NCBI GenBank assembly: GCA_009103225.1 | Contig: RHPI01000671.1 | Location: 260,838-324,837, forward strand | DNA: 64,000 nucleotides | Source of the DNA: Chlorokybus atmophyticus | Lineage: Eukaryota > Plantae > Mesostigma and Chlorokybus algae | Reading direction: 5' to 3' | Shown here: positions 42,511 through 58,619 of the stretch, piece by piece | Layout of the letters: each line of letters starts with the position of its first letter | Numbering within the stretch: position 1 is the stretch's first letter | Program-made: the position numbers and the translations under genes | The notes under the pieces: model-generated | Seen by the model: only the letters and a program-made list of their open reading frames with translations | Database searches by the model: none | Told to the model about the DNA's origin: nothing

Positions 42511-45340
42511 ATGGGTGGCGGGTGCAGCGTGGCGGCGGCGGCGGCGGGTGGCGACGACGACAACGCCGCTGCGTCAGGAGATGGGGTCGCAGCTTCCGTG
42601 AAGCCTCAGCCTGGTACGCGGCGTTGTCGTTCTGAACTCTTGTTATGCAATGTATGAGCGTTGCTGCTGCTGTATTGGAATCGCACAAGTCTGTTGGCGA
42701 GTTGGAGTTTGGTGGAGGATGTAGGAGGCGGAAACAGGACAACTATATTCGTGAATGATAGAGTGGAGAGGGATGCTGCTTGCTTGAGCTGCGTTGAGAG
42801 CGTTGTTTGTAAATATACGCCCTTGGTGAAGCAGAAACAACAACAACAACTACCCATCGACAACGTACCTTGTTGCCTACTCACTCACTCACCCACCTAC
42901 TCACTCAGGCACTTATGCTCTACTCCCCATTCTCACTGTCGCACTCTCTCAATCTTTCACTCACTCTCCCACTCCCACTCCCTCCCTCCCCCACTTCCTC
43001 TCTCGCCCTCACCCTTTGATGCCACCCAGGTCTTCCTGGCCACACAGGCCGCGTGCTGTGCATGGCCGCAGCCCCCGCAGCGCCAGCGACAGGAGGCGGT
43101 TCTACCAAACAGCAGCCTCAGAGGCTGTACACGGGCGGGGACGACGGACGCGTGTACGAGTGGGACGTGCAGGAATTCCTACCAACACGATGCTTCAAAG
43201 GTGGGCGTGGGCGTGTGTGGGTGGGGGTGGGTGGCATGCGTGCGTGTGTGCGTGTGGGTGATTGCGCGCACATGCGTGTACGTGTGCGTGCGCACACATG
43301 TGTGTCAATGCGGGTGCGTGCTTGCTGTATGGGCACGGGTGCGTGCAGGTGCGGGTGTGCGTGTGCGCACACATGCACTCACTCTCACACGCACGCGCCC
43401 GCACAAACACGTGCACACACGCGTGCATGCGCACGCACTGACACACAGGCGCGGGGGCGCATGTTTGTATCAGCACCAACCCTTAATGCATGCAAGTGAC
43501 ATACCTCTCCCCCTCCCCCTTATCAGGGCACAAGTCGCCAGTATTGTGTCTAGTCGTTGGTGGCGACGGCAGCGTGGACGCCGACCCGCACGTGTACTCC
43601 GGCTCTCACGACGGGGAGGTGCGCGCGTGGGTACCCAATAAGGCTGGCGGTGGTGGCGGGGCAAGCGCGCCAACCACACCGCGGGGCGGGAACGCTCAAC
43701 ATGTTGGGTTCCGAGACAACAACAACAACAACGGGAGCGTGCCTCCCACGCCAAGGGGAGGAGGAGGGTGGGGAGGAGGAGGGGAGGGGAGTGCGGCGAG
43801 CACACCGAGAGGGGGTGGGGGTGGGGAGGGTGGGATGTGGGGGGATGTGGTCCCGCCGTCGCCGAGGGGGAGAAAGGCGGTGTTCGCGGGGCATAAGGAC
43901 GCGGTGTATTGCATGTGCGTACACGGCCGGATGCTTTATACTGGTGAGTGTGTACAGAAAGTGCATGTTGTTGGCGCACAGTCCCAAAGCAGGTACTCTC
44001 TATGTAGGGTCTCAGGACAGGACTGTGAGGGAATGGGACCGAGCAAGCGCGCGCACACTGCGGGTGTTTCCAGCAACAGACTCCCTCGCCGCCAACGACC
44101 CCGTTATCGGGCTTGGTCTCAACCCCTCCATCCTCACCCTCTACTCGGCCACCATGCAGGCACTCTAGCCGTGCGCGCATGTGGGCGTGCACTCGTGTGC
44201 TTGTACAAGCATTTGCATGGGTGTGAGCGTGTGAGTGTGTTGATGCATACACATGCATGCATGCGTACTGGTGTGCGCGTGAGCGTACGCTTGCGCGTGC
44301 GTATGCGTGTGCCTGTGCCTGTGCCTGTGCCTGTTCGTGCGTGTATGAGACACGTTGGTTGTTGCATTATCACACTCCCTCTCTCGAGTTCACCGTCATC
44401 TCTGCACAGGGTTGCGTGCGTGGATGGGACTTATCGCCCCTCGACCCCACCAGCACCCCCAAGCCCTCGCCCAAGTCCTCTCAGCTGCATCCCTCCCTGT
44501 CGCCCGTGTCGGCCTTCGCGCTCGCGTTCGAGCGCGCGTTCCTCGCGGGCGGAGGGGCGCCGGGTCACCTCGGCGAGCTCAACACGCAACAACAACAACA
44601 GCAGAAAACGGGTCTATCCCACAACGGCAACACAAACCAACAGCAGCAGCAGCAACAACAACAACAACAGGGGAGTCTGCTAGCGATGATTGAAGCCCAC
44701 CCGCACAGCGTCACGAGCTTGTGCATCGGCCATGGCAGCATATTCATTGGTACGTTGGTTTGTGAAGGACATATCGAACCAATACAACAGGAAATGTCGT
44801 AGCAGCAAGAGTTATGAATCAATAAAAGTATACACCTGCGCCCACGTGCACGGCCATGCGCTCGCGCACACACACATGCACACGCGCATACGGAGATGCA
44901 CAGATAGGGGCATGTGTGCACACACATGCAAGCACACGCACGTATGCACTCCCTCTCACACACATGGACATTGACAGTCACACGCACAAACACACTATCA
45001 TTGACACGCAGGCGCAAGCAACGGTACGATAGTGGAGCATTCCCTCGCCACGCTGAAGCGCGTGCGTGAGCTTCATGGCCACATCGACGCTGTACGTTGC
45101 CTCGCCGTCGTCGGCGACATGCTCTACTCGGTATGCACTCTTACTCCTCCCCACACTCTCTTTCATCAACACATGTTGTCACAACGTGTTGACGTGCAGG
45201 GCGCGGGCGAGGGCGAGTTGCGCGAGTGGAGTCTGGCCTCACGCGCGCACACACGCAGCGAGCGCGTGTTCAGGCCGTACCTCGAGGGCGGGGACGGGGC
45301 GGACTTTGTGCAGCGCATCGTAGACAGATTGGGAGGGTAG
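42511..45340 (+). CDS. WD40-repeat protein with N-terminal MGGGCS acylation motif and low-complexity inserts
   Basis: WD repeats read GHTGRVLCM..LYTGGDDGRVYEWD, GHKSPVLCL..VYSGSHDGEVRAW, GHKDAVYCM..LYT|GSQDRTVREWD, LYSATMQ|GCVRGWD, AHPHSVTSLC and GHIDAVRCLAVVGDMLYS|GAGEGELREW. The stop TAG is at 45340. Confidence 0.9.
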
Positions 45341-45450
45341 AAAGTGGACCATGCTTACAACATGAACACATCTATTGACACAAGTTCGGCAACATGGCAA
45401 CAATGACTACAGCACCAACAGCTGGTGCCCAAGTTTTTCTGTCACAAGTG

Positions 45451-48429
45451 TCACAACTCTGTGTGGGTGTTTGAGCGTGGACCCGCCGCCGACCCCACAT
45501 TGGCTCCTTGACTCGCGAGGGCACTTATCACCTCCACGTAAACATCAATACCCTTGAGATACACATCCTCCGCAAGATACTGCACCCACAGAGAGATCAA
45601 GTCAGTGGGGTTGATGCTGATTCACAATTCACAATTCTCTCGGATAGCAGCGAGACGAAAGCTCTCCCACCTCGTTGTGGTCGTGTAGTAGTACGGGCGT
45701 ATCGTACATCGGCGAGAATCCGAGTACGGGCACCCCCTTCTCCCTCATGAACCTCCCGTCCGTGGCGGCGGGGAACACCTCCTCCGTGAGTTCGAACCCG
45801 CTGCGACGCACCGCGAGACGGAAGACGGACCACCAGGGGTTGGAGGCATCGCGCTTGAAGACCAGAGGCTCGTTGTTCGGACCACGCGGAGAGATCTGCG
45901 TAGAGTTTGTGTGTGCATGCGTCCGTGCATGTGCATGCACATATGCATGAGTGTGTCTACGTGTGCATGCGCGAGTGTGCGTGGCTCCGTGCGCGCGCGC
46001 GCGTGCACATGCGTGTGTGCGTATGTGTGCGTGTGCTTGTGCATGTGCGTATGCATACGCGTGCGCGTGTAGTCCATACTTACGCTGAAACAGAAACAAC
46101 ATACAAGATAGGGGTATCTACCTTCTGCTTGAAGTGGTATGACATGTTGCGCGAGGCCGGCGCCCAGTCCTCCGCGATCATCTTCTCCAGGGCGTCCACG
46201 TCGGCCTCGGGGGGCACGCGGATGTCGAGACCGAACTCGGCCTCGGACGGCTGCACGTTCATCACGAAACCCTTCTCTGTCTCCATGCCAGCCTAAACGG
46301 CCACACAAGTTCCGAATCACATCAGCGCCCGCGGAGACGCACGCACACATACACACGAGCACGTGCGCACGCACGCAGGCATGAACACACTCACAGGACT
46401 ACACATGCCTGTACGCACGCACAGACGCACATATCCACACCTTGAGATATGCCACATTGACGCTGATGACGTCCCCCTCAGCGACGAGTCCAGACTTCCA
46501 CAGCGCCATCTGCGCGGCGCGGAAGGACCGCACGGACCCGAGCGACCGCCCCAGCGCCTCCGCGGCGCAACCCTCGTCGTACATCCTGGACCCATGACCA
46601 GGCAACCCAACAGCCTGACAACAGATACCTCGATGTCACACACGCACACGCTTGCACACAGATCATGCACGTCTCGTGCCATCTCACCCTCTCCACCACC
46701 ATGAGAGAAGTGCATGTGGCTATGTCGTGTCGACACAACATCCCCACAACACACCCTCATCTTCCCCGACACAACATCCCCACCCACCTTGACAATCAAC
46801 CACCACGGCGCCCTCTCCGCATGAAACGCCCTCAATGTTGGCACCGAAGACGTCCCCGCCGGATTCGCCAGTCCCTCATCCAGCGCCATAGCAATGTCAA
46901 GTGACTTGAACATCTCCGACTCCACAAAGGCGCCCATCCCGTCGCGTCCCGACACCTCCTCGTCAGGGACGAACAGGACGCGGACGGTGCGGAGGGGGAC
47001 GAAGGGGGTGAGGAGGAGGCGGCGGATGGATTCGAGGTACTGCTGACCGACGCACTTCATGTCCTGAGAGAGGGGAGAGGGGCGAAGGGTTGGTGGAGTG
47101 TGGCATTGTTGGGTTGGGATTGGGATTGGGGAAGTGAAGGCATGACAGGTACAGGAACTATCTTGATGAGTGTCTTTTCGATCACTCACTTCAATCAGAC
47201 TGACACGGCTATGTGCACACACATGCACACGCATACGCACACATGTGCGCGCGTGAGCGTGCCCGTGTATCTGTGTGCAAATGCATGCGCACGCACGCAC
47301 GCGCGCACACACACCCACGCATTCCCTCACCTGCGCTCCCCTCGCGTATATCCTCCCTTCCCTCCGTACCGCCCCGAACGCCTCCCCCCCCTCCCACCGC
47401 GCCTCCTCCGCGGGCACCACGTCCATGTGCGAGTTCAGCAGCACGCACGGGAGGGAGGGGTCCGACCCCAACCAGGTGAGCAGGAGGACGGGCTTGCCGG
47501 GGACGAAGTCGCGACGTTCGGCGGAGAGACCCAACTCGGCGGCCTGTGTGTGCGTGTGTGTAAGTAGAGAAGTTGAGATTACGATGGCGTGCACAATAAG
47601 TATGCGACGTGATGGGTCACTCCTGGACACGATGCCGGCACCGAGCACAATAGACGAATTCATGCACAAACACAACTACCAACCATCGTTGTGCACATCA
47701 GCCAGCCTGGCCAATCCAAACACCCACAGCACGCATGCAAGACGCTGTTGGCAACAGCGCACCGCACTCTATGTATGTGCCCGTGTGCGCGCGCGCGTGT
47801 GTGTGTGTGTGCATGTATGCGCGTGTGTGTGCAAGCGCATGCGTATTTCCACAGTGGAATACATGGAGCGTACGCACAAGATGAAGATGATGATGATGAT
47901 GATGATGACCAGCACTTTATGCATGCAAGTATGCATGGACAGAGCCACACCAACTCACGCAAACTACAGCGCGCTGATGAGACAATCGCTGCCAGTGCAT
48001 GGCAAGACACCAACTGTGACTACTTCTCAGCAAGAAACCGCATTACCACCGTCCATGCACAGGCATACAAATGCTGACACCAGCAACACGCAAGCACAAG
48101 CCACAACACCAGTACTGTCCCTTTCAGCCCGGGTCAGCCAAGCAGCAATGGATGGTTGCTTGATCAATCAACCACACCTGCTTCAGTATGAAGTCGGCTG
48201 CCTTGTCGTAATCCGGCTTCGAGTGATCCGTCCGGATCCGCAGGTACTCCTGGAACCGCGCGATCACGGCCTCGGACGCCAGCGACGCCGCGGAGGCGGC
48301 GACGGAGGAGGAGGACGAGGGGTCGGTGACGACGCCCGCGTCAGCCGCCAACGACGACACCGCTGCTGTCGAGAGGAGCAGCGCCAGCCATAACGACGCC
48401 GTCGCCGACGCCGCCGCTGACGCCGCCAT
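45451..48429 (-). CDS. ACY1: Aminoacylase-1 (M20A metallopeptidase) with signal peptide and C-terminal HTEL
   Basis: Contains IARFQEYLRIRT, VLLNSHMDVVPA, IYARGAQ|DMKC, FVPDEEV, ALDEGLA, GHGSRMYD, NVQPSEAEFGLDIRVPP, FPAATDGRFMR and GFSPMYDTPVLLHDHNE|YLAEDVYLKGIDVY..RSNTHTEL*. Confidence 0.95.
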
Positions 48430-48513
48430 GCTGGCAACCCAACAAACTATCAGTCTGGCCTGGTGTGGTCTGGTCTGATTTTGGACAGAACAACCACCAG
48501 GCCCGGACTCAGC

Positions 48514-49843
48514 ATGGCGGCCAGCGTCAGTTGCCTGGCCCAGGTCAGCGGGCGCGGCCTTGTGACCAGCGGCCGCGGAAGCGGCAGCCTGGGCGGCCTG
48601 CGCTTCCCCTCCTCTCGTCGTTCAGCCCAGTCTGCAAGGCTAGTGCCAAGGCAGGCCCAGACCCAGGCCCTGTTCGGTTGGGGCCGCAAAGCTAAGGTTC
48701 AAGTCAATGACAAAGCGAAGGAGGCGAAGGACGAGCTGAGGAAGGCCGTGGAGGGAACCGAGCGGGGCGTGCTGACGCAGAACGACCGCGATGGGCGGAG
48801 AGACGCCATCGTGCAGTGCGTGGAAGCCCTGGAGGTGCGTGTGTATAGAGATTAACTGTGGGTATGCAGAGTAGTTGAGTTTGCACAGATATGGCGCAAT
48901 GCGCATGCTAGCATTCGTCAATCACGCACGCAGTGTCAAAAGTGTATGCGCGCGTGTGTGTGTAGTGCATGTGGACATGCGGCTGCGCATTGCAAAGTAC
49001 ATGATGTCTCTGTGTGTATGCGTGCGCGTGCGTCTGTAACTGTGCTGCGTGGATGTATTGTTGCATGCTGCTAAGTGCATTGCATGCATGCGGTGAAGCA
49101 CATCTGTGCATGCATCACATTGCCGCTTCTCCCATCGTCATGAGTGCAGGAGTTGGGTAAGGGGAGCGAGACGACAGGCGCGGATTCCCTGAGCGCGACG
49201 TGGCGTCTGCTTTGGACGACCGAGAAGGAGACGCTCTTCCTGCTGCAGCGCGCGGGACTGTTCGGCACAAACGCGGGCGAATCCTACCAGGCAAGTGGGT
49301 GCTGGGATTGGAGAGAAAGAGGAGGGAGAAGAAGTCATTTGTGTGTACGTGTGTGTGCAGGTGATTGATGTGAAGGCGGGGACGCTTAACAATGTGATAG
49401 AGTTCCCGCCCTCCGGCGCATTTGTCGTCGACGCCACCATCGAGGTGTCCGGACCCCAGCGCATCACGTTCAAGTACGCGTTGTGTGTGGGCCTTGTATC
49501 TGGACCCCAGAACCCTTACTTCTGTTGCTTGCCTCACCACTGCCATGCGCTGCTGTTCTCATAATTATGTGTTGGGTGGGTGTGTTGCCGTTACAGGTTT
49601 GACAAGGCGCGATTAAAGACGGACAAGTTGAACTGGGCATTGCCCCCTTTTGGCAAAGGCTGGTAAGCTTGAAAACCTTGTGTCCAGCATGCCAGTATAC
49701 TGCCCATTGAATTTCGACATCTGTGCCTGATGTGTTGCAGGTTTGATACAGTGTACTTGGACAATGACCTGCGCATTGCAAGAGACATACGCGGAGACAT
49801 ACTTGTCGTGGAGCGTTGTAAGACACCTTGGCAGGGCGTGTAA
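48514..49843 (+). CDS. FBN9: Plastid lipid-associated fibrillin, FBN9-like
   Basis: A transit peptide MAASVSCLAQ.. is followed by LSATWRLLWTTEKETLFLLQRAGLFG, VIDVKAGTLNNVIEFPP, LPPFGKG|WFDTVYLDNDLRIARDIRGDILVVER. The stop TAA is at 49841-49843. Confidence 0.92.
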
Positions 49844-50114: not shown

Positions 50115-53100
50115 TTACCAAAGAGCGTCCCAGAATGACTCCCAGAAGCTGTCAAAGTACCTGCTTTGGGTCAACCTGCCCCAGAGCTCCACCACTGTGC
50201 CCATCCGAACTGCACACAAGTAGACAATAAGCACCCGGCGCGCCGGGTGCATGCGCATACAAATTTCTATAGTGTCGAGAATATCTGCATCAGCTGACAC
50301 AGGGCACATGCAAGCCATACTGACATGGATGTCACAGAGCTCAAAGTGAACATACTTACCAACGGCGCGGCATGAAGTAAGGATGAACGCTTCAAGAAAG
50401 ACAGGCATCTTGACCAACTGCCGCAAAGCAGGGTCCTCCGAAATCCAACTTGAGAAATTTGCAGGGATACCCATGGCCTTCAGGTGCTCGTCGAGTGGAC
50501 TTTTCGGGAGCTCCAGCCCGTGCAGGTCCAGTTGCAGCAGCCTGAACACGACAACAAACTGACAGTCAGCGTCATCACTGTCAAACGCGGAGTGTTTGTC
50601 TAATTGCTTGCGTAATCAGTGGTATCATCACAATTGCGCAACCAGTGGCGAAGGAAGAGTGCAGTCATGACATAAAACAGAACCTGCGTTTGGTTGCGGC
50701 TATCCTTGGTGGGGGTTCCGCGGCGCACTCCGATACAACAGTGTAGATGGCGCCAAGCTGTTTGAGCACACAGGCAGCGTGCTGAGCGTCATCGCGTTCG
50801 CTTGGCGTCGAGGCGGCATCCGCAATGTATGACAGCACGGCGCCTTGCTGGCTGAGGGCTGCCGAGCTCACCATGACATTGCTATTGACAAACTCGGAGC
50901 TGTTCCTAAGCAACTTCTTCACCTGCACGGCATCTACAAGTTGGTCTCATGCACCATGCATGCGCGCGCAGTTGCGATCACGTATGCATAGCATCAGCAC
51001 CTGCTCGCTCTCAGGTTTCAATCCAGCAATCAGTTTGTTCAGCAGCTTCTGGACTGCTTGTTGCACGGCGGGATATTGAGGTAGCATGGACAAATTGCCG
51101 AGCTCGCCGGCGGCATCGAGGGCGGTTCGCACAGCGAACAGCACCTCCGCAAGCTCACACGTGCCGTCGGGACCAGTGGCAAGGTCCTTCACCGCGAGCC
51201 ACGCGAGCTCCTGGAATGAGCGCACCTGCTTCGGGGGCGGGCGCCCTGCGCTCACGAGCTTGCGATAGAGGTTTTGCGTCAGGTGGAAGTCCACGGCCGT
51301 GCGCAGCTCCGCCATCGTGTCGCACACGAGCCAGTAGCCGGGGATGTCCGCTCCGGCGGCCTTCGCGCGACGCAGCGCATTCTTCACCACAATCAGCTCG
51401 CCGGACTCAAGGATCTCTGACGCGTCCATGTTCCAAAACTGGCGAGGCGTCTGGAGGCCAACGGTGTCGAGCTTCTGCGCGACGACCTCTCTCATGGCGT
51501 CATCAATGGCCATGTGCAGCTGAGAAAACCAGAGGTTCTCAAAGTTGGGAGGCACGTTGGCTCCGACCTTCTCCAGTCGCAGCTTCAGACGCGGTCGCAC
51601 CTGTGGCAGTAACCATGTGATGTGTATGTTGTTGATGCAGATGATCAACTCTCGGTCAGCTCTGCAACGCACCTGCCCAAGCGCATAAGTCTGAACGATC
51701 CCGCTGGTTACTTCTGTTTGCGGATGCAGATGAAGGTTCTCTTTGACCTGAGACAGCAATGGGCGGTGTTCTGTTGAGTTGCACATGCACCACACACCTT
51801 GCTGTGTTTCAATAAACCAGGCTGGTACCTGTCGTTCGAGGGACTCAATGACAGTACTCAGCCCAATCACACACATCTCAATGCTCATCTTGGTCAGATA
51901 CACGAAGCGCGCATACTCAGAGTCTGGCGCGACATCGAACAAGTTGACGTTGGGCGTGAGCATGGGAGCGGCAGCGGCGATGTCGGCCTTGGTGAGGATA
52001 CCAAGATCCAGCTTGGCGGCCAGGTGCTCCAGCGTTGGCCAGCGCGTCTGCATCCAGTTGCTGAACTGCAGCAGCAGGCGGCGGTACATGCCCAGAGGCA
52101 GACCAAAAGCAACCTCTATATCTTGCAGGGTGGAAACCATCAAGGACACCTGTAACAAACAGATGTAAGCAGCAAAGACAAACACCAATGAACCGTTGTG
52201 CAATATGGCAATGCACTAGCTACCACACAACAATGTAGACACATGAAACAAGCATTTCATTTTCAGCAATCTTGACAGCAGATGTTTTTGCATGAATTTT
52301 GTGTCATTTAAGTGTATCAGCAAGGGTGTCTCAAACCACCTGGACATGCCTCGTGCTTACCGGTCGCCCGAAGAGAACCTCAAACCGCGCTTGCAAGTGG
52401 ACGAGTGCTCCCAATGTGGAAAACCCGTCAGCTTTGGTCAGCTTCTCCGCCTTGATGGCGATGCCACGTGTGGAGTTGTGCGACAAGAACCGCTGCAGGG
52501 CAGCCTTCTGTGAGCTGCCTGGAGGCACTGTGAAGGAGGACCGGCGTGCGTGGCTGCTCTTCGCCTGCTTTTTGACAAACGCCGCGAACTCGGTGTACAT
52601 GTCTTTGAAGGCCTGCATAGACTCAACAGGATCAACCTCAAGTTATGTAGTGCGTCTAATTCAAAGTGACACATGACCAAATGGATGCACACCTGCTTGA
52701 ATTGAGTCATTCTACCCGCAAGTCTGTACCAGGGCGACATATGTGTTAGCATCACAGAGCGGATGTGCTCAACACAAAACCGATAGCAATCAACAAACGT
52801 ACCGCATCATGGGGTTGAGACGCTGTCCAATAATGTCCATCAGCATGAGGACCATGCCGATCGCGATGAGAGCGACTAGCACAAGTGCGATGTATATGAA
52901 GGACGAGGCCAATTCGTGGTTTTTGTTAGAGATGTCGAATATGGACACCGTCTGGCAGTACTGCGCCGTCCCCAATATGCCAATGGACGGGATGATCTCG
53001 CATCGCTCATACCCAGACTCCGTGCGATTGTAGCTGTGCACAAAAAAAAAAAGGTGAATAACTCCTTGGAAAGATAGAGGGAGGTCTTACCCTCAAGTTG

Positions 53101-56100
53101 ACGCTTAAGTTGGATAAAGTCCTCACCCTGTGTACTTGAGCTCAGACCACTGCCTGCGCTGACGAATGCGGTCCTGGTTGATGAAGGAAGTGATGGGGTC
53201 TCCACCCAGCTTCAAGAATATTAGGCCGGATCCGGAAGTGAAGGCAGACTCATTTAGCAACACCTGTCATGTATGGATGCCATGAGCACAGGCGGACAGC
53301 AGCAACGACTCGTCCTGTGTTGGGGTAAGCATATGCACACTGATGCTGCGAGAGCAGTTGGCAAATGAACTATGCATGCCAGTTGACCACCCTGTGCGTC
53401 CATACAGCGAACTGCAAATGTCATGGAATTGTGCTGATACGGTCACGGCATGCATCAGCTTGTCTTTATCCGCAAATACCATGATTCAACTGCATGCTGC
53501 CTGACACAGCTATACACAACTATGATGTGTGATTGTCTGGTGCACACATTGGCAGCCATCAACATCTCAACAAGCCTAACAACACACGAGAAAAGACAGC
53601 ATGTGTGTGTACGCTAAGCACCGAGACACTGAAGCATCAATGCATGGGTAACACTTGGTGGACCTATAGCGTCACTCACTATGTCCACGGTAATGACAGA
53701 TTTGGTTTGACTACAGTGCAACAACATACACCAGGGCCTTGGGTAAGTTGCATATGCGGTGAAAACGACTGTCGGGTGTGAGACAAAAGCAGCTGCTGAT
53801 AGGTCATGCTTGGACTGCAATCACATACAATTAAGGCACGCAATCTGTTACTCTGGTGGTGATGACAACTGTACAATGTCATGTCCTGCAAGCGCTTAGG
53901 CAGGGACCAAGGCACATGCTTTGGGGTAGACTGTGCTGCCAACTCACCTGCTTTGGTGCCACTTGTGCATCGACAAAGCTGACAGCTGGTGCAGCGTACA
54001 CGCCAATTTGAGCAGACAGCAGTGACTCATTGGTGCTGGAGCTGTACGCTAGGTCAAGCACCAGGAGCCCGCGATCCGCGGAGTCGCTGGCTCTTGTTGT
54101 TAGAATGACGACTGCCAACACCACCAGCGTGATGATGCGGATGACCTGCGCCACAATGTTCTCCACCAGCTGCATAACAACCTAAACAGCACCAGATGTC
54201 AGCAACAAGGACCGCAAACAGTAAACTCAACAGGGCCCAGCTAAGGACAACATGTGTGTGTACATATGAACACTTGTAGCAATCTAACAGACCTTTGTTG
54301 GAGCTTCTAGGGACAGCAGCTCATCTATGTTATCCTCCTGAGAGAGAGGGTCTGTTTCCGGTTCGAGTGTGAGGTCTTCCTGGCTGAGGGAGAGCGGAAA
54401 ATTGGGCTTCCTCTGGAAAGTGGGGTTGGGCGACATCGGCATAGTGGTGGTGCTGACTAAGCGCTGAAGGGCAACCTGTGCATTGACAATGCGTCAAGGT
54501 TAAAGCAATTGGCTTATCGCACCATTAAATTGCACCAAGCGCTGTCCAACTTGCCTCCATGTTACGCTTGGTCTTTCGCTTGTGAAGCAGCAACCATTGG
54601 ACTAGTCTTATTGTCAGACCACTGAAGCGACCCAGCAGCAGCCCCAGCTTCATTGTCCTCGCAATCTGACCCCACGTCTGCGCACACAATGCCCACGTAA
54701 GGTACGCACAGGTGTTTCACACGTCAATCCTCTATGACATTGGGTAAACAGCGAAAACCGTTTGAGCCACTGTCATTACGCACTCAAGTTGTGGATCCAC
54801 ACTGTTACCTGCCGTCGTGTCTCCCAAAGGTACGACTCTTCTCCACTCAAAGTTCGGTTATCCCGAATTGGGTCCGCCACCCAATTCAACAGTGCAAGGA
54901 ACCCAAATATTGCTACGCTGTCCATGAAAAAGGTGCTCGTGAAGAGGTAGCCGAATGGCCACTGTGCATACGTATGGAAAAGGATGTCAACGACGAAGAA
55001 TGCGAAGAGCACCGTGTAAACCACCTGCACAAAAGTAAGCACATCAATGTGTCACACTAGTGTCAATGCAAAGTAGGACCAATCAGGCTTGTCACCAATG
55101 TCACCTATTCAAAAAGCGCAGGATCTGACCTGCAGTGCTGCATCGCCAGAAACAGGCACCCATAGCATCTGAAAAGGTGGCATCAGGATTCCAAACACCA
55201 TGGCGACGATAAGAAAGCTTTGATATGGCCAGCTGTCCATCAATCGCAACAATTAATCAGCTGGTACAATAATAGTACAGCCACTGTGTGCCAATTCTCG
55301 GCTATGTGTTAAACTCATGCACCTGAAGTAGACCAACTTTACTGCAGCAACCGACTGCGAGACACTGTCATGGACAATCACGGTGCAACTGTCATAGATG
55401 CACAGCCTCTCTTTCTTTGACATGCCGCTGTGGAGGCTTGTCAGCTTGACAGTAAAGGTTTCATGCGTTGTTGTCACGTCATCGGGCAAAATGTGAACGC
55501 TGAAGTTCTTTTGTTTCTGCAAACATGCTGCCAGTGAGCCAAGCATGTCTCAATGCTTGATGCTAAGCCCACATGACTTGCACTGTTCACAAGTGTTAAT
55601 TGCATGCTAGACATAGCACAAGACAAAGCACCTCGCCAGGTGCGAATGTGAGGATGCCTCTTGTCGATACATAGTTACGTCCATCTCTGCGCAAGACACT
55701 GTGACGCTGCGCAAACTTGGCAATTCAACAAGAACCTGTGTCCTGTGCAGAACTCACTTGGCAGTGCCTTCCTCTGTCTCATACTGCACACTGGAGGTGC
55801 CAGTGTCAGGCCCTTCCCGGTTGACACTGATTGCACAACACAGAAGGGTCAGCCAGCCTCAAAAAGTCAGATTAAGCAGTTGAACTCAAACATTTACAGT
55901 GGGATCACTTACCATATCTGCACTGTGCCAGCATCTTCCCTCACCTAGCAGCAACCAATACATCTGTTAAAAGACGACTGCAACAACTGCTGCGCAGCAA
56001 CCTGTGATGCTACTTCCCAATCACAGACTCACCCAATACGTGGGAGCCCCCAGACTATAGTAAGTCTCCTCACGCGGACAGAATTCCTCCTGCTGACTGC

Positions 56101-56450
56101 CACTGCACCAATTACAAAGATCAGTTGCACGCCATGCTAACATGCTGTGAGTTGACACCCTAAAGAGACAACAAAGAGCGATAAGCAAGAATGTAGGATG
56201 GCACTGAGACAAAGACATGAGAGAGAAGCGACTGTGGATCCTGAAACAAGAAACATTGCTCGACTCGCCAAAGCTGCAGATGCATGCAAGCAAATCACAA
56301 CAGGGCGTGACACTGACCTGGGCGCTGCTGTCTCCTCCTCCGCAATCATGTCTATGGTTGTGTCCAATAAGGGCTTCGCCATCTGCGACGGACTGCTGAA
56401 CATGAGAACTCAGTACTCCAGTGTCAAGTGCACATAGAGACTTGAAGGGA
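50115..56450 (-). CDS. Large multi-exon membrane protein: Calx-beta, S1-S4 voltage-sensor-like domain, TM, ectodomain, TM, then an unrecognised cytosolic helical region
   Basis: Calx-beta reads YYSLGAPTYW|VREDAGTVQI|CVNREGPDTGTSSVQYETEEGTA|KDGRNYVSTRGILTFAPGE|KQKNFSVHILPDDVTTTHETFTVKL. S1-S3 read WPYQSFLIVAMVFGILM..|VVYTVLFAFFVVDILF..GYLFTSTFFMDSVAIFGFL, and the S4-like segment reads IARTMKLGLLLGRFSGLTIRLV. The TMs read QVIRIITLVVLAVVILT and SIFDISNKNHELASSFIYIALVLVALIAIGMVLMLMDIIGQRLNPMMR. The stop is at 50115. The 5' end is unresolved (56.1-57.4 kb). Confidence 0.8.
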
Positions 56451-57625
56451 CTCCAAGTGAGCAACAACACAGTGCGTCATAGTGATATAGACAGCCAGCA
56501 TAGAGGTTTAAGGCCAGCATTGAACAAGACAACGCAAATGCATGTTCAAAACTAACAGACCTCAGCTACGAGGACAACCTGGTAGCTGAGATCTGTCAGT
56601 AAACTAAAATTTCTGGTGAGGTCAGCGAGCGTACCACACCCAAGGTGAAGCATCCACCTGCGGCTTGACCAGACCGCGCACAAAATGCACTATCCAGCAA
56701 GCCGCTCAGTTGCCCAATGCGCCTCCCGGAACCTCTCGCAGTTCAACCAATACTGCGAAAGACTAGTTGATGTCCAATCAAACAACGACCTCGGCTTGGC
56801 CCGACCAATTGGCGCCAGCTGGACCAGCTGCTCCACTGCCCAGTGGAGCAGTCGCAGCAAGCCGGTTTACCGTCGCGGTTGATGTCACTGACTTGTACGG
56901 GAGCGCATTGGCAATTCAGCGGCAGCATCAGCAACAACGCGGTGGAGTAACCAGCATGACCCTGACAGCATGCCGTCAGCAATGCCGTCACCGCCGCCTT
57001 CACCACCGCCGCTGCCACCGCCGCGCTACGCTTGCTGACGCCTGTTGCAGATATCGACGAGACCGTCGGCAACTTTTGCGTCCAATACCCGCTCCAACAA
57101 TCTGATATCGAGCCGCAATCCGACATCCTCGCCAATCGGCAGAAGTCCTGATTCCCTACACCTGAATCGGGACCAGCCATACCGCTTCACAGCGCCTGCA
57201 TTCAGGACTCTTCTTTTGCAGTGGAAGTCCGGTTCAGGGCCCCAAGGGTGGGTTCCGAACCCATCATTTGGGTCTGGAGCCTATGATTGTTGAAGGCTAT
57301 GACAGCTGGCAGCTCGGTGAAGCGGCGACGTCGGGGTCGGCGGTGATCACAGTGGATGGTTCTGGAGGCTATCAACGATGACTCTGTAGCTGCTTGCTGC
57401 TGCTGGCTGTGTCGCAGCTCTTACTGTGTGAACTGGTTTAGGGTTTGTTGAGGTTGCCCAGGCCAGTGCTTTACAGCAAAGCTTAGCCTGGTCAGGCCAG
57501 GCGAGGCGAAACTTTGCGCTGGGATGATGAGGAGAAGGAGGAGACAGATGTAGTGGTTCATTGTACTTCAGGATGCAGTCAATGGTTTGCGGGATCAGAT
57601 GATGTTCTGCCAAAGTGGGGCCCAG

Positions 57626-58619
57626 ATGGGGGGCACTTGGATTGGCCGACTTTGGGGTTTGGCCGGCCTTGGTGGCGCCAGCGAATTCAAGGCCATCATC
57701 TTGGGCCTGGACGGCGCCGGCAAGACCACTGCTCTCTACAAGCTGCACCTCGGAGAGACCGTTGTTACGCAACCCACCGTTGGATCAAATGTGGAGAGGA
57801 TAAGCGTACGCAATGGCGAAGTTGTCTTTGAGGTGATGTTACAGTGACTCGTAATCGCGGTTATTTCTGTCCTGTTCAACTGGTTGGTGCTGTTGTAGTC
57901 GACATGCTGAATTCACCAAGCAGCTCAACACATGCTAAGTAGCTCACATCTCATACTGAACACAACGCAATATGGGTAGTTTCCAGCAAGTACTGTACAT
58001 TATTTGCGACTGCATGATCCAGGCATCTGCGCACAATGGTGTTGCGTGTGATAGCCATCGTTGGTCGAGTGCATTGCTCATGACACCGGATCAGTACAGG
58101 TAAGGCTGTAACAACTGAAGTAACTGCTCCGCATGCCTGACAGGTTTGGGATGTAGGCGGGCAAGAGAAGCTGCGCGCATCATGGCCAACGTACTTCCAG
58201 GGCGCACATGCAGTTATGTTGGTCGTCGACAGCACCGATCGCACACGCATCGCTGTAGCACGAGTAAGTGAAGTGTTCTGAGTTGTGCAAATACCAGATG
58301 CTGAAGAAATGTAGTGAGTAATGGCTGCGACATGCACTAGTAATACTGACAGTGCCTTGCTGGTGAGCAGGATGAACTGTTGAAGTTGCTCAAGCATGAA
58401 GACTTGGTGAAGCCTGTGCTGCTAGTGTATGCCAACAAGCAGGACTTGCGCAATGCCATGACGGTGGCTGAGATAAGCGATGCCTTGTCACTGCATACTG
58501 TGACCAAGCACAGCTGGCACATACAGCCGTGCTGTGCGATCACTGGGGAGGGGTTAAAAGACGGTTTCCGATGGCTGGTGCAGCAAGTCCAGATACGAAG
58601 AATGGCCGATGGTAGATGA
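57626..58619 (+). CDS. ARL5: ARF-like small GTPase ARL5 (plant ARFC1 type)
   Basis: Begins [10 protein letters not shown] (myristoylation Gly) and contains [51 protein letters not shown] and [14 protein letters not shown], in three coding exons. Confidence 0.93.

Follow-up and report, generated by a model that had tools for sequence, protein, structure and literature searches.

Calx-beta domains act as regulators in sodium/calcium exchangers and also occur as modules of adhesion receptors. In the exchangers NCX1 and Drosophila CALX they form a CBD1–CBD2 pair held in the loop between the fifth and sixth transmembrane (TM) helices. Voltage sensors, for their part, are recognized by a Phe-x-x-acidic motif in S2, an Asp in S3 and basic residues in S4, which together make up the gating charge-transfer centre of Kv channels; the voltage-sensing phosphatase follows such a sensor with something other than a recognizable pore, and the ACalpha cyclases of Paramecium and Plasmodium follow six helices with a large cytosolic region. 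We know of no description of a Calx-beta domain joined straight to S1 of a voltage-sensor-like bundle. Here we analyse a gene with this layout in a 64,000-nucleotide stretch (the window) of the alga Chlorokybus atmophyticus (contig RHPI01000671.1). Chlorokybus and Mesostigma are lineages that split very early from the rest of the plant line. The gene, which is expressed and under purifying selection, contains at least 21 coding exons and codes for a membrane protein of about 1,168 amino acids; a second Chlorokybus gene, a paralogue, and a Mesostigma viride orthologue share its whole architecture.

The gene is transcribed from the minus strand, with a coding sequence (CDS) that runs from the ATG at 56382 to a TAA stop at 50117-50115 and a transcript 5' end that reaches about 57217. 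It therefore exceeds the region 52800-56100 in which a sequence-only reading of the window had proposed a Calx-beta domain fused to a membrane module of the channel-adenylyl-cyclase type. Six-frame translation gives many short open pieces on the minus strand, as in an intron-rich eukaryotic gene. All sequencing runs with matching contigs were labelled as one organism, and 30-43% of the words of 50900-56600 were present in them. Alignment of the transcript contigs to this interval revealed 18 exons, with GT-AG joints and one GC-AG intron; the contigs omit stretches of 72-684 nt that are bounded by CT..AC on the plus strand, equivalent to GT..AG introns of a minus-strand gene. Contig X1 (4,521 nt) matches the window with zero mismatches (100% identical), and the joints of seven contigs from a second study (X2) equal those of X1. 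Two further contig sets, X3 and X4, are labelled as the same organism and have identical joints; they represent sister lineages at 90-95% identity, and from exon to exon they diverge from the window by 2-10%. Their probable source is the cryptic Chlorokybus species reported in PMC8611356. When the exons were joined, after placing the joints on canonical dinucleotides, the resulting 3,004 nt had a single frame free of stops, whereas the remaining frames contained 32 and 45. Because the joined exons give this single open frame, the Calx-beta exons and the membrane exons belong to one transcript, and the idea that they might derive from separate transcripts fails. All of the peptide strings quoted in the sequence-only reading fall within this one spliced minus-strand open reading frame (ORF).

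The product is already present in public predicted proteomes as an unnamed protein (EukProt EP00898 Chlorokybus atmophyticus P002347; JGI Chlat1 3112, Chrsp21S08799), referred to here as P0001 (1,164 amino acids). We performed an exhaustive HMMER search with the 72-amino-acid S2-S3 exon against 1.84 billion representatives, which recovered P0001 at 99% identity. Meaningful matches formed three clusters only, all from Chlorokybus or Mesostigma: P0001 itself, the Chlorokybus paralogue P0002 (Chrsp35S05192; 1,157 amino acids, 36% identical to P0001 in a whole-protein alignment) and the Mesostigma viride protein Mv17598 (P0003 and P0005, of 1,785 and 1,860 amino acids; P0003 is 28% identical to P0001). 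A fourth match, P0004, is an SRCR/CUB/ZP protein that aligned over seven short stretches and was rejected as a repeat artefact. Both P0002 and P0003 align with P0001 along the entire membrane module and tail, and each has a Calx-beta domain at its N terminus. Word-indexed protein searches with the 422-amino-acid read-through ORF described below, with P0001 residues 150-600 and with the family profile returned the query proteins alone, within a reach limited by the word index and the length window. Degenerate-pattern scans of metagenome contigs (membrane and tail profiles) and of prokaryotic genomes (membrane profile) revealed no relatives. On the basis of the exhaustive search with the 72-amino-acid probe and the word-limited profile searches, the family looks confined to the Chlorokybus–Mesostigma clade. 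It is small: Chlorokybus has two of its genes and Mesostigma has one. Our search of the literature on Calx-beta with channels or algae, on PF26726 and on RasGEF with a voltage sensor found no description of the fusion. No paper that we could find describes Calx-beta combined with an orphan tail and six helices of voltage-sensor-like type, in line with what had been proposed from the sequence; the claim of novelty extends to the architecture and not to the protein, which was public and unnamed.

Taken by itself, the Calx-beta domain is unremarkable for its family. Pfam PF03160 matches P0001 residues 38-147 (81.8 bits, E value 5.2e-23, cut-off 27; profile positions 9-117 of 119), almost exactly where the domain had been read by eye (56063-55370), and it also matches P0002 and P0003, N-terminally in all three. 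Searches with separate exons returned weak Calx-beta pieces only and are uninformative because the exons are short. The nearest solved relatives in the PDB are the CBD1 domains of CALX and NCX1 (3rb5, 3us9, 2dpk and 8sgi; E values of 1.6e-16 to 1.8e-11), with which the domain shares a full-length alignment, the V-x-E, T-E-x-G-T-A and P-D-D motifs and, by inference, a cytosolic location. The differences are equally clear. The Chlorokybus protein has a single Calx-beta domain rather than the CBD1–CBD2 pair, and carries it N-terminally, just before a helix, instead of within the TM5-TM6 loop. NCBIfam TIGR00845 aligned at CBD1 positions 399-490 only (65.8 bits against a cut-off of 679.85), which indicates that the membrane repeats of exchangers (Na_Ca_ex) are missing, and Pfam detected no PF01699 repeat in P0001-P0003. 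The alpha-repeat membrane domains of the Na+/Ca2+ exchanger (CaCA) family were thus detected by neither model.

Roughly half of the residues that bind calcium in CBD1 have been substituted. The CBD1 ligands of NCX1, which we take to be E385, D421, D446, D447, E451, E454 and D498-D500, were compared with P0001 by alignment to the CBD1 structures. P0001 retains E48, E75, D109, D110 and E116; Pro108 stands in place of D446/D515 (Asp to Pro), Thr113 in place of E451/E520 (Glu to Thr) and His-Asp-Ser in place of the terminal DDD. Only E48, D109 and D147 are invariant across the family. These alignments bear out the suggestion that the acidic ligands are only partly kept, so any calcium binding is putative. 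Judged from these residues, the four-ion site of CBD1 cannot be formed here, and a reduced calcium site is possible.

The membrane module begins 15 residues downstream of the Calx-beta domain. Hydropathy shows S1, S2, S3, S5 and S6 as clear helices, with short loops within S1-S4, and S3 and S5 are separated by an amphipathic S4; the proposed order of Calx-beta, four helices, cytosolic linker, TM helix, ectodomain and TM helix is supported. S1-S4 is the segment of highest conservation in the family, with 51% and 46% identity to the two homologues in an essentially gap-free alignment (one gap). Its invariant positions (P0001 numbering) include F206-x-x-D209 in S2, D231 in the inner third of S3 and W270-G-Q-x-A-R275-T-M-K278 at the start of S4. 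The basic residues further along S4 are not conserved, so R275 and K278 are the sole conserved charges of a helix that had been rightly described as weakly basic. The bundle resembles voltage-sensor domains (PF00520; Hv1 and the voltage-sensing phosphatase) in its four helices, S2 Phe-x-x-acidic motif, inner-S3 Asp, S4 basic residues at i/i+3 and predicted cytosolic N terminus, and we infer from this pattern a voltage-sensor-like domain in which the charge-transfer centre and two S4 charges are retained. It departs from them in lacking a profile match, in having only two conserved S4 charges, in the N-terminal Calx-beta domain and in what follows it: a linker that is long and disordered, then two helices on either side of a 130-amino-acid ectodomain. 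With the voltage-sensing phosphatase it shares a sensor that leads into something other than a recognizable pore.

The S4-S5 linker comprises 68 amino acids in P0001 and is more than 100 amino acids longer in Mesostigma, with 21-29% identity. The loop between S5 and S6 contains three N-x-S/T sites, the invariant cysteines C501 and C516, and DRGLL and GYN..SG motifs. No recognizable pore loop was found in this 130-amino-acid stretch, and a low-confidence AlphaFold2 model places beta strands, and no pore helix, ahead of S6. Neither the length of the loop nor that of the linker fits the arrangement of a re-entrant pore helix with a filter and a short S4-S5 linker. S6 and the helix that continues from it show 28-31% identity among family members. 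The charge distribution, with KRKTKR after S4 (following the positive-inside rule) and four net positive charges after S6, fits a topology in which the N terminus and Calx-beta domain would be cytosolic and the S5-S6 loop outside, as do the N-x-S/T sites.

The C-terminal region is predicted to be all-helical by a low-confidence AlphaFold2 model. It gave no Pfam, NCBIfam or PDB match at E values up to 10 and no look-alike in the ESM Atlas, and Pfam detected neither RasGEF nor RasGEF_N in P0001-P0003. In the exon at 51001-51600, 34 of the 40 differences listed between Chlorokybus lineages fall at third codon positions, and given this bias the tail is under purifying selection; it belongs to a constrained coding gene and is not a chance ORF. 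A stop-free ORF of 422 amino acids at 50950-52215 on the minus strand mimics a single exon here; it holds two introns (about 72 and 81 nt) that are in frame and without stops, and its ends are intronic.

Taken together, we tentatively favour, at a confidence a little short of even, a lineage-specific protein of membrane signalling that does not form a pore and is based on a voltage-sensor-like bundle; on this reading, we infer, the protein is neither a channel-cyclase nor a sodium/calcium exchanger. S1-S4 would be the functional core, because it is the most conserved part whereas S6 is among the least. The Calx-beta domain, held tightly near S1, could bias the conformation of S1-S4, either by binding calcium, in the form of one ion or a few, at a reduced site, or simply by being a rigid beta-sandwich. 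S5, the ectodomain and S6 would then serve as a two-helix relay or sensor that signals to or from the cytosolic helical tail, and not as a selective P-loop pore. The non-pore reading is favoured because the conservation is the reverse of that in P-loop channels, the S4-S5 linker is long and disordered, and a Cys pair and beta strands, the latter predicted at low confidence, occupy the place of the pore helix.

Several results weigh against this reading. The voltage-sensor fold has no profile match and no sequence match to a solved structure, and the conserved S4 charges number two only. An hhalign comparison of the membrane profile with Escherichia coli Kch gave a probability of 0.2%, which is a weak test because the profile has an Neff (effective number of sequences) of 1.7. 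The AlphaFold2 models were unusable, with a mean pLDDT (the per-residue confidence of the model) of 39 for the membrane module and 46 for the tail, because the alignments held four sequences only; fold searches with them returned generic helical rows (Z scores of 8.1 or less and TM-scores below 0.3) and were given no weight. As for calcium, roughly 5-6 of 10 CBD1 ligands are kept in P0001 and 3 of 10 family-wide.

On the side of the favoured reading, language-model features offer a lead. For residues 150-600, the nearest ESM Atlas cluster is green-algal (0.92, 202/256 features), with PF26726 in 86% and Ion_trans in 24% of its members; for residues 360-600, the best ten clusters all carry PF26726 (Helical_RasGEFs; 0.92-0.94, 196-205/256 features). 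Judged by the Atlas calibration, which does not extend to parts of proteins, such counts speak for a true family relation; the result counts as a lead only. The PF26726 clusters come from green algae, diatoms and ciliates and resemble the Chlorokybus protein in the S5-loop-S6 region and post-S6 helix. The Chlorokybus protein differs from them in lacking a RasGEF domain and a sequence-level match, and a Calx-beta domain is not reported in the clusters. PF26726 gave no sequence-level match in the family with a local Pfam copy that possibly does not include that model.

The best-placed alternative, which we consider rather unlikely, is that the protein forms a genuine cation channel, tetrameric and with six helices, that belongs to the voltage-gated superfamily. 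Its pore would be very divergent, with an enlarged turret, and the cytosolic Calx-beta domain would make its gating depend on calcium in the manner of RCK or CNBD modules. Six helices in canonical order and topology, together with the voltage-sensor-like motifs, are what such a channel would have. The conserved motif C-x-(T/S)-(V/A)-S-I-(F/Y) ahead of S6 could be its filter, and the nearest Atlas clusters include carriers of Ion_trans, among them a bacterial Ion transport cluster (0.85). However, the membrane modules of P0001-P0003 gave no Pfam or NCBIfam match at E values up to 10, channel profiles such as Ion_trans (PF00520) and PKD_channel included, and the search of the PDB with the family profile found no channel. 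The expectation that the membrane region would match Ion_trans was thus not borne out in Pfam, NCBIfam or solved channels, and the HAMP-like start suggested for the last TM helix found no HAMP match. The pattern of constraint also argues against a channel, since S6 and the segment before it are less conserved than S1-S4, the opposite of typical channels. The same is true of the S4-S5 linker, which is long, disordered and variable in length, and of the beta strands flanked by two conserved cysteines that are predicted, at low confidence, where a pore helix should be.

Less probable still is a receptor or adhesion-like protein without voltage-sensor homology, in which the role of the Calx-beta domain, possibly extracellular, would be structural, that of an Ig-like module such as the one in integrin beta4, and the six helices would form a bundle that resembles a transporter or serves as a generic anchor. 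Calcium binding is absent from many Calx-beta domains, most of the ligands are lost family-wide, and the voltage sensor is without profile support. An extracellular domain would also suit the ORF, which has no stop as far upstream as an ATG at 57180 and encodes a hydrophobic segment on the way. That extension, however, shows next to no coding signal, and neither the homologues nor the JGI model contain it. Also against this alternative are the S2/S3/S4 charged triad, which is invariant and at the expected depths, the position of S1-S4 as the most constrained region and the presence of Ion_trans among the Atlas neighbours.

The proposal that the protein is a receptor of the Paramecium/Plasmodium channel-adenylyl-cyclase type, with a voltage-sensor-TM-loop-TM region homologous to that of ACalpha and a replaced effector, is highly improbable: six helices and a large cytosolic domain are alike in general, but the C-terminal halves of the three family members contain no class III cyclase (Guanylate_cyc, PF00211) or other Pfam domain and are instead an all-helical orphan of 560-600 amino acids, the membrane part has neither an Ion_trans match nor a potassium-channel pore signature nor a detectable sequence relation to ACalpha, the variable S4-S5 linker of 68-180 amino acids is unlike that of channels and channel-cyclases, and the exhaustive search with the S2-S3 exon returned Chlorokybus and Mesostigma proteins with no alveolate cyclase.

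Were S1-S4 a true voltage sensor, this small family would offer a new coupling of calcium to a voltage sensor, a sensor that works without a classical pore and a testable role for about 560 amino acids of conserved cytosolic sequence without a known fold. A bolder proposal, which we regard as doubtful, is that the family represents a new class of voltage-sensor-domain proteins confined to the earliest-diverging streptophyte algae. An exchanger-type calcium-binding domain would sit directly on S1 of the voltage-sensor bundle, and the bundle would drive a non-pore relay of two helices and an ectodomain, and a new helical effector, in place of an ion pore. If this were true, it would be a third use of the voltage sensor after channels and the voltage-sensing phosphatase, and would bring together membrane potential, calcium and a signal from outside. 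Should the bundle prove to be something else, the protein would be a lineage-specific orphan membrane protein with a Calx-beta module.

Table 1. Features of the Calx-beta gene, in window coordinates and in the order of transcription.
Feature	Position	Strand	Basis or remark
Possible 5' exon, 5' untranslated region (5'UTR) or doubtful N-terminal extension	56871..57180	-	X1 reaches ~401 nt further 5' than 56393
Upstream exon, 5'UTR or extension	56636..56689	-	30-nt loose end of X1 at 56393 matches 56636-56665 exactly; acceptor 56689 inferred
Exon with probable start ATG 56382-56380 (Met1 of P0001)	56318..56393	-	Contig joints; start of P0001
Calx-beta domain, CBD1-like	55367..56056	-	Pfam PF03160 and CBD1 structures
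Calx-beta exons	56102-56033, 55944-55913, 55826-55758, 55686-55632, 55516-55323	-	Five exons
Short coding exon, 32 nt	55913..55944	-	Transcript joints; lies in Calx-beta
S1-S4, voltage-sensor-like four-helix bundle	54582..55231	-	Hydropathy
S1	55231-55157	-	Hydropathy
S2	55141-54965	-	Hydropathy
S3	54952-54872	-	Hydropathy
S4, amphipathic	54674-54582	-	Located between S3 and S5
GC-AG intron, donor GGAG/gcaagt	54476..54554	-	Joint 54474/54554 in X1, X3 and X4; other introns GT-AG
S4-S5 linker, predicted cytosolic, acidic, Ser/Pro-rich	54296..54581	-	Variable length
S5 helix	54092..54295	-	Hydropathy peak 2.84; exon 54181-53948 contig-supported, VVMQ codons included
S5-S6 loop/domain, predicted extracellular, ~130 amino acids	52928..54091	-	Between S5 and S6; holds the 684-nt intron
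S6 helix	52832..52927	-	Hydropathy peak 3.01; runs on into long post-S6 helix
Micro-exon in post-S6 helix, 31 nt	52693..52723	-	Contig joints and nucleotide count
C-terminal region, predicted cytosolic, all-helical orphan, ~590 amino acids	50115..52612	-	Joints down to 50998 in contigs
Tail exons	52612-52361, 52149-51829, 51747-51673, 51600-51001, 50922-50684, 50541-50360, 50209-50115	-	Last three inferred

Beyond the contig-supported exons, the gene model was extended upstream and downstream by reading frame and splice consensus; the three inferred tail exons are identical to P0001. The public protein and the extended model agree from Met126 of the model to the stop, except that the public protein lacks four residues, VVMQ, where S5 begins. 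Transcript contigs cover the corresponding 12 nt (window 54169-54181, minus strand), and both homologues have residues there. Because contigs and homologues hold this position, the public model reflects either a downstream alternative acceptor (12 nt) or a slight error.

At the 5' end, the frame stays open upstream to the ATG at 57180, through an Ala/Val-rich hydrophobic stretch encoded by GCG-rich DNA (56871-57180), with a splice at 56871/56689 that was placed from frame and GT-AG alone. The 125 amino acids upstream of Met126 have a codon-usage log-likelihood of 0.6, compared with 29-54 for equal blocks of confirmed CDS; they are absent from the homologues, in which only 27-53 amino acids precede Calx-beta, and from the JGI model. 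We therefore took the ATG at 56382 as the start and rejected the one at 57180 as a likely start. Codon statistics and homologues suggest that 56871-57180 is 5'UTR, the alternative being an isoform with a signal anchor.

Divergently oriented from the Calx-beta gene is an Arf-family small GTPase gene (57587-58616, plus strand; two exons match Pfam Arf, at E values of 3e-20 and 1e-13). The gap between this gene and the 5' end of the Calx-beta transcript is just about 400 bases, and the two probably share a bidirectional promoter. On the other side, downstream of the Calx-beta gene and on its strand, lies a gene for an M20-family, aminoacylase-like peptidase (about 45400-48600, minus strand). One X3 contig of 6,942 nt continues for 3,540 nt beyond 50998 and may span both the Calx-beta and the M20 peptidase genes. 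In the region of about 43000-49500, long CA/TG-rich low-complexity tracts give rise to His/Thr/Ala/Cys-rich pseudo-ORFs in all frames.

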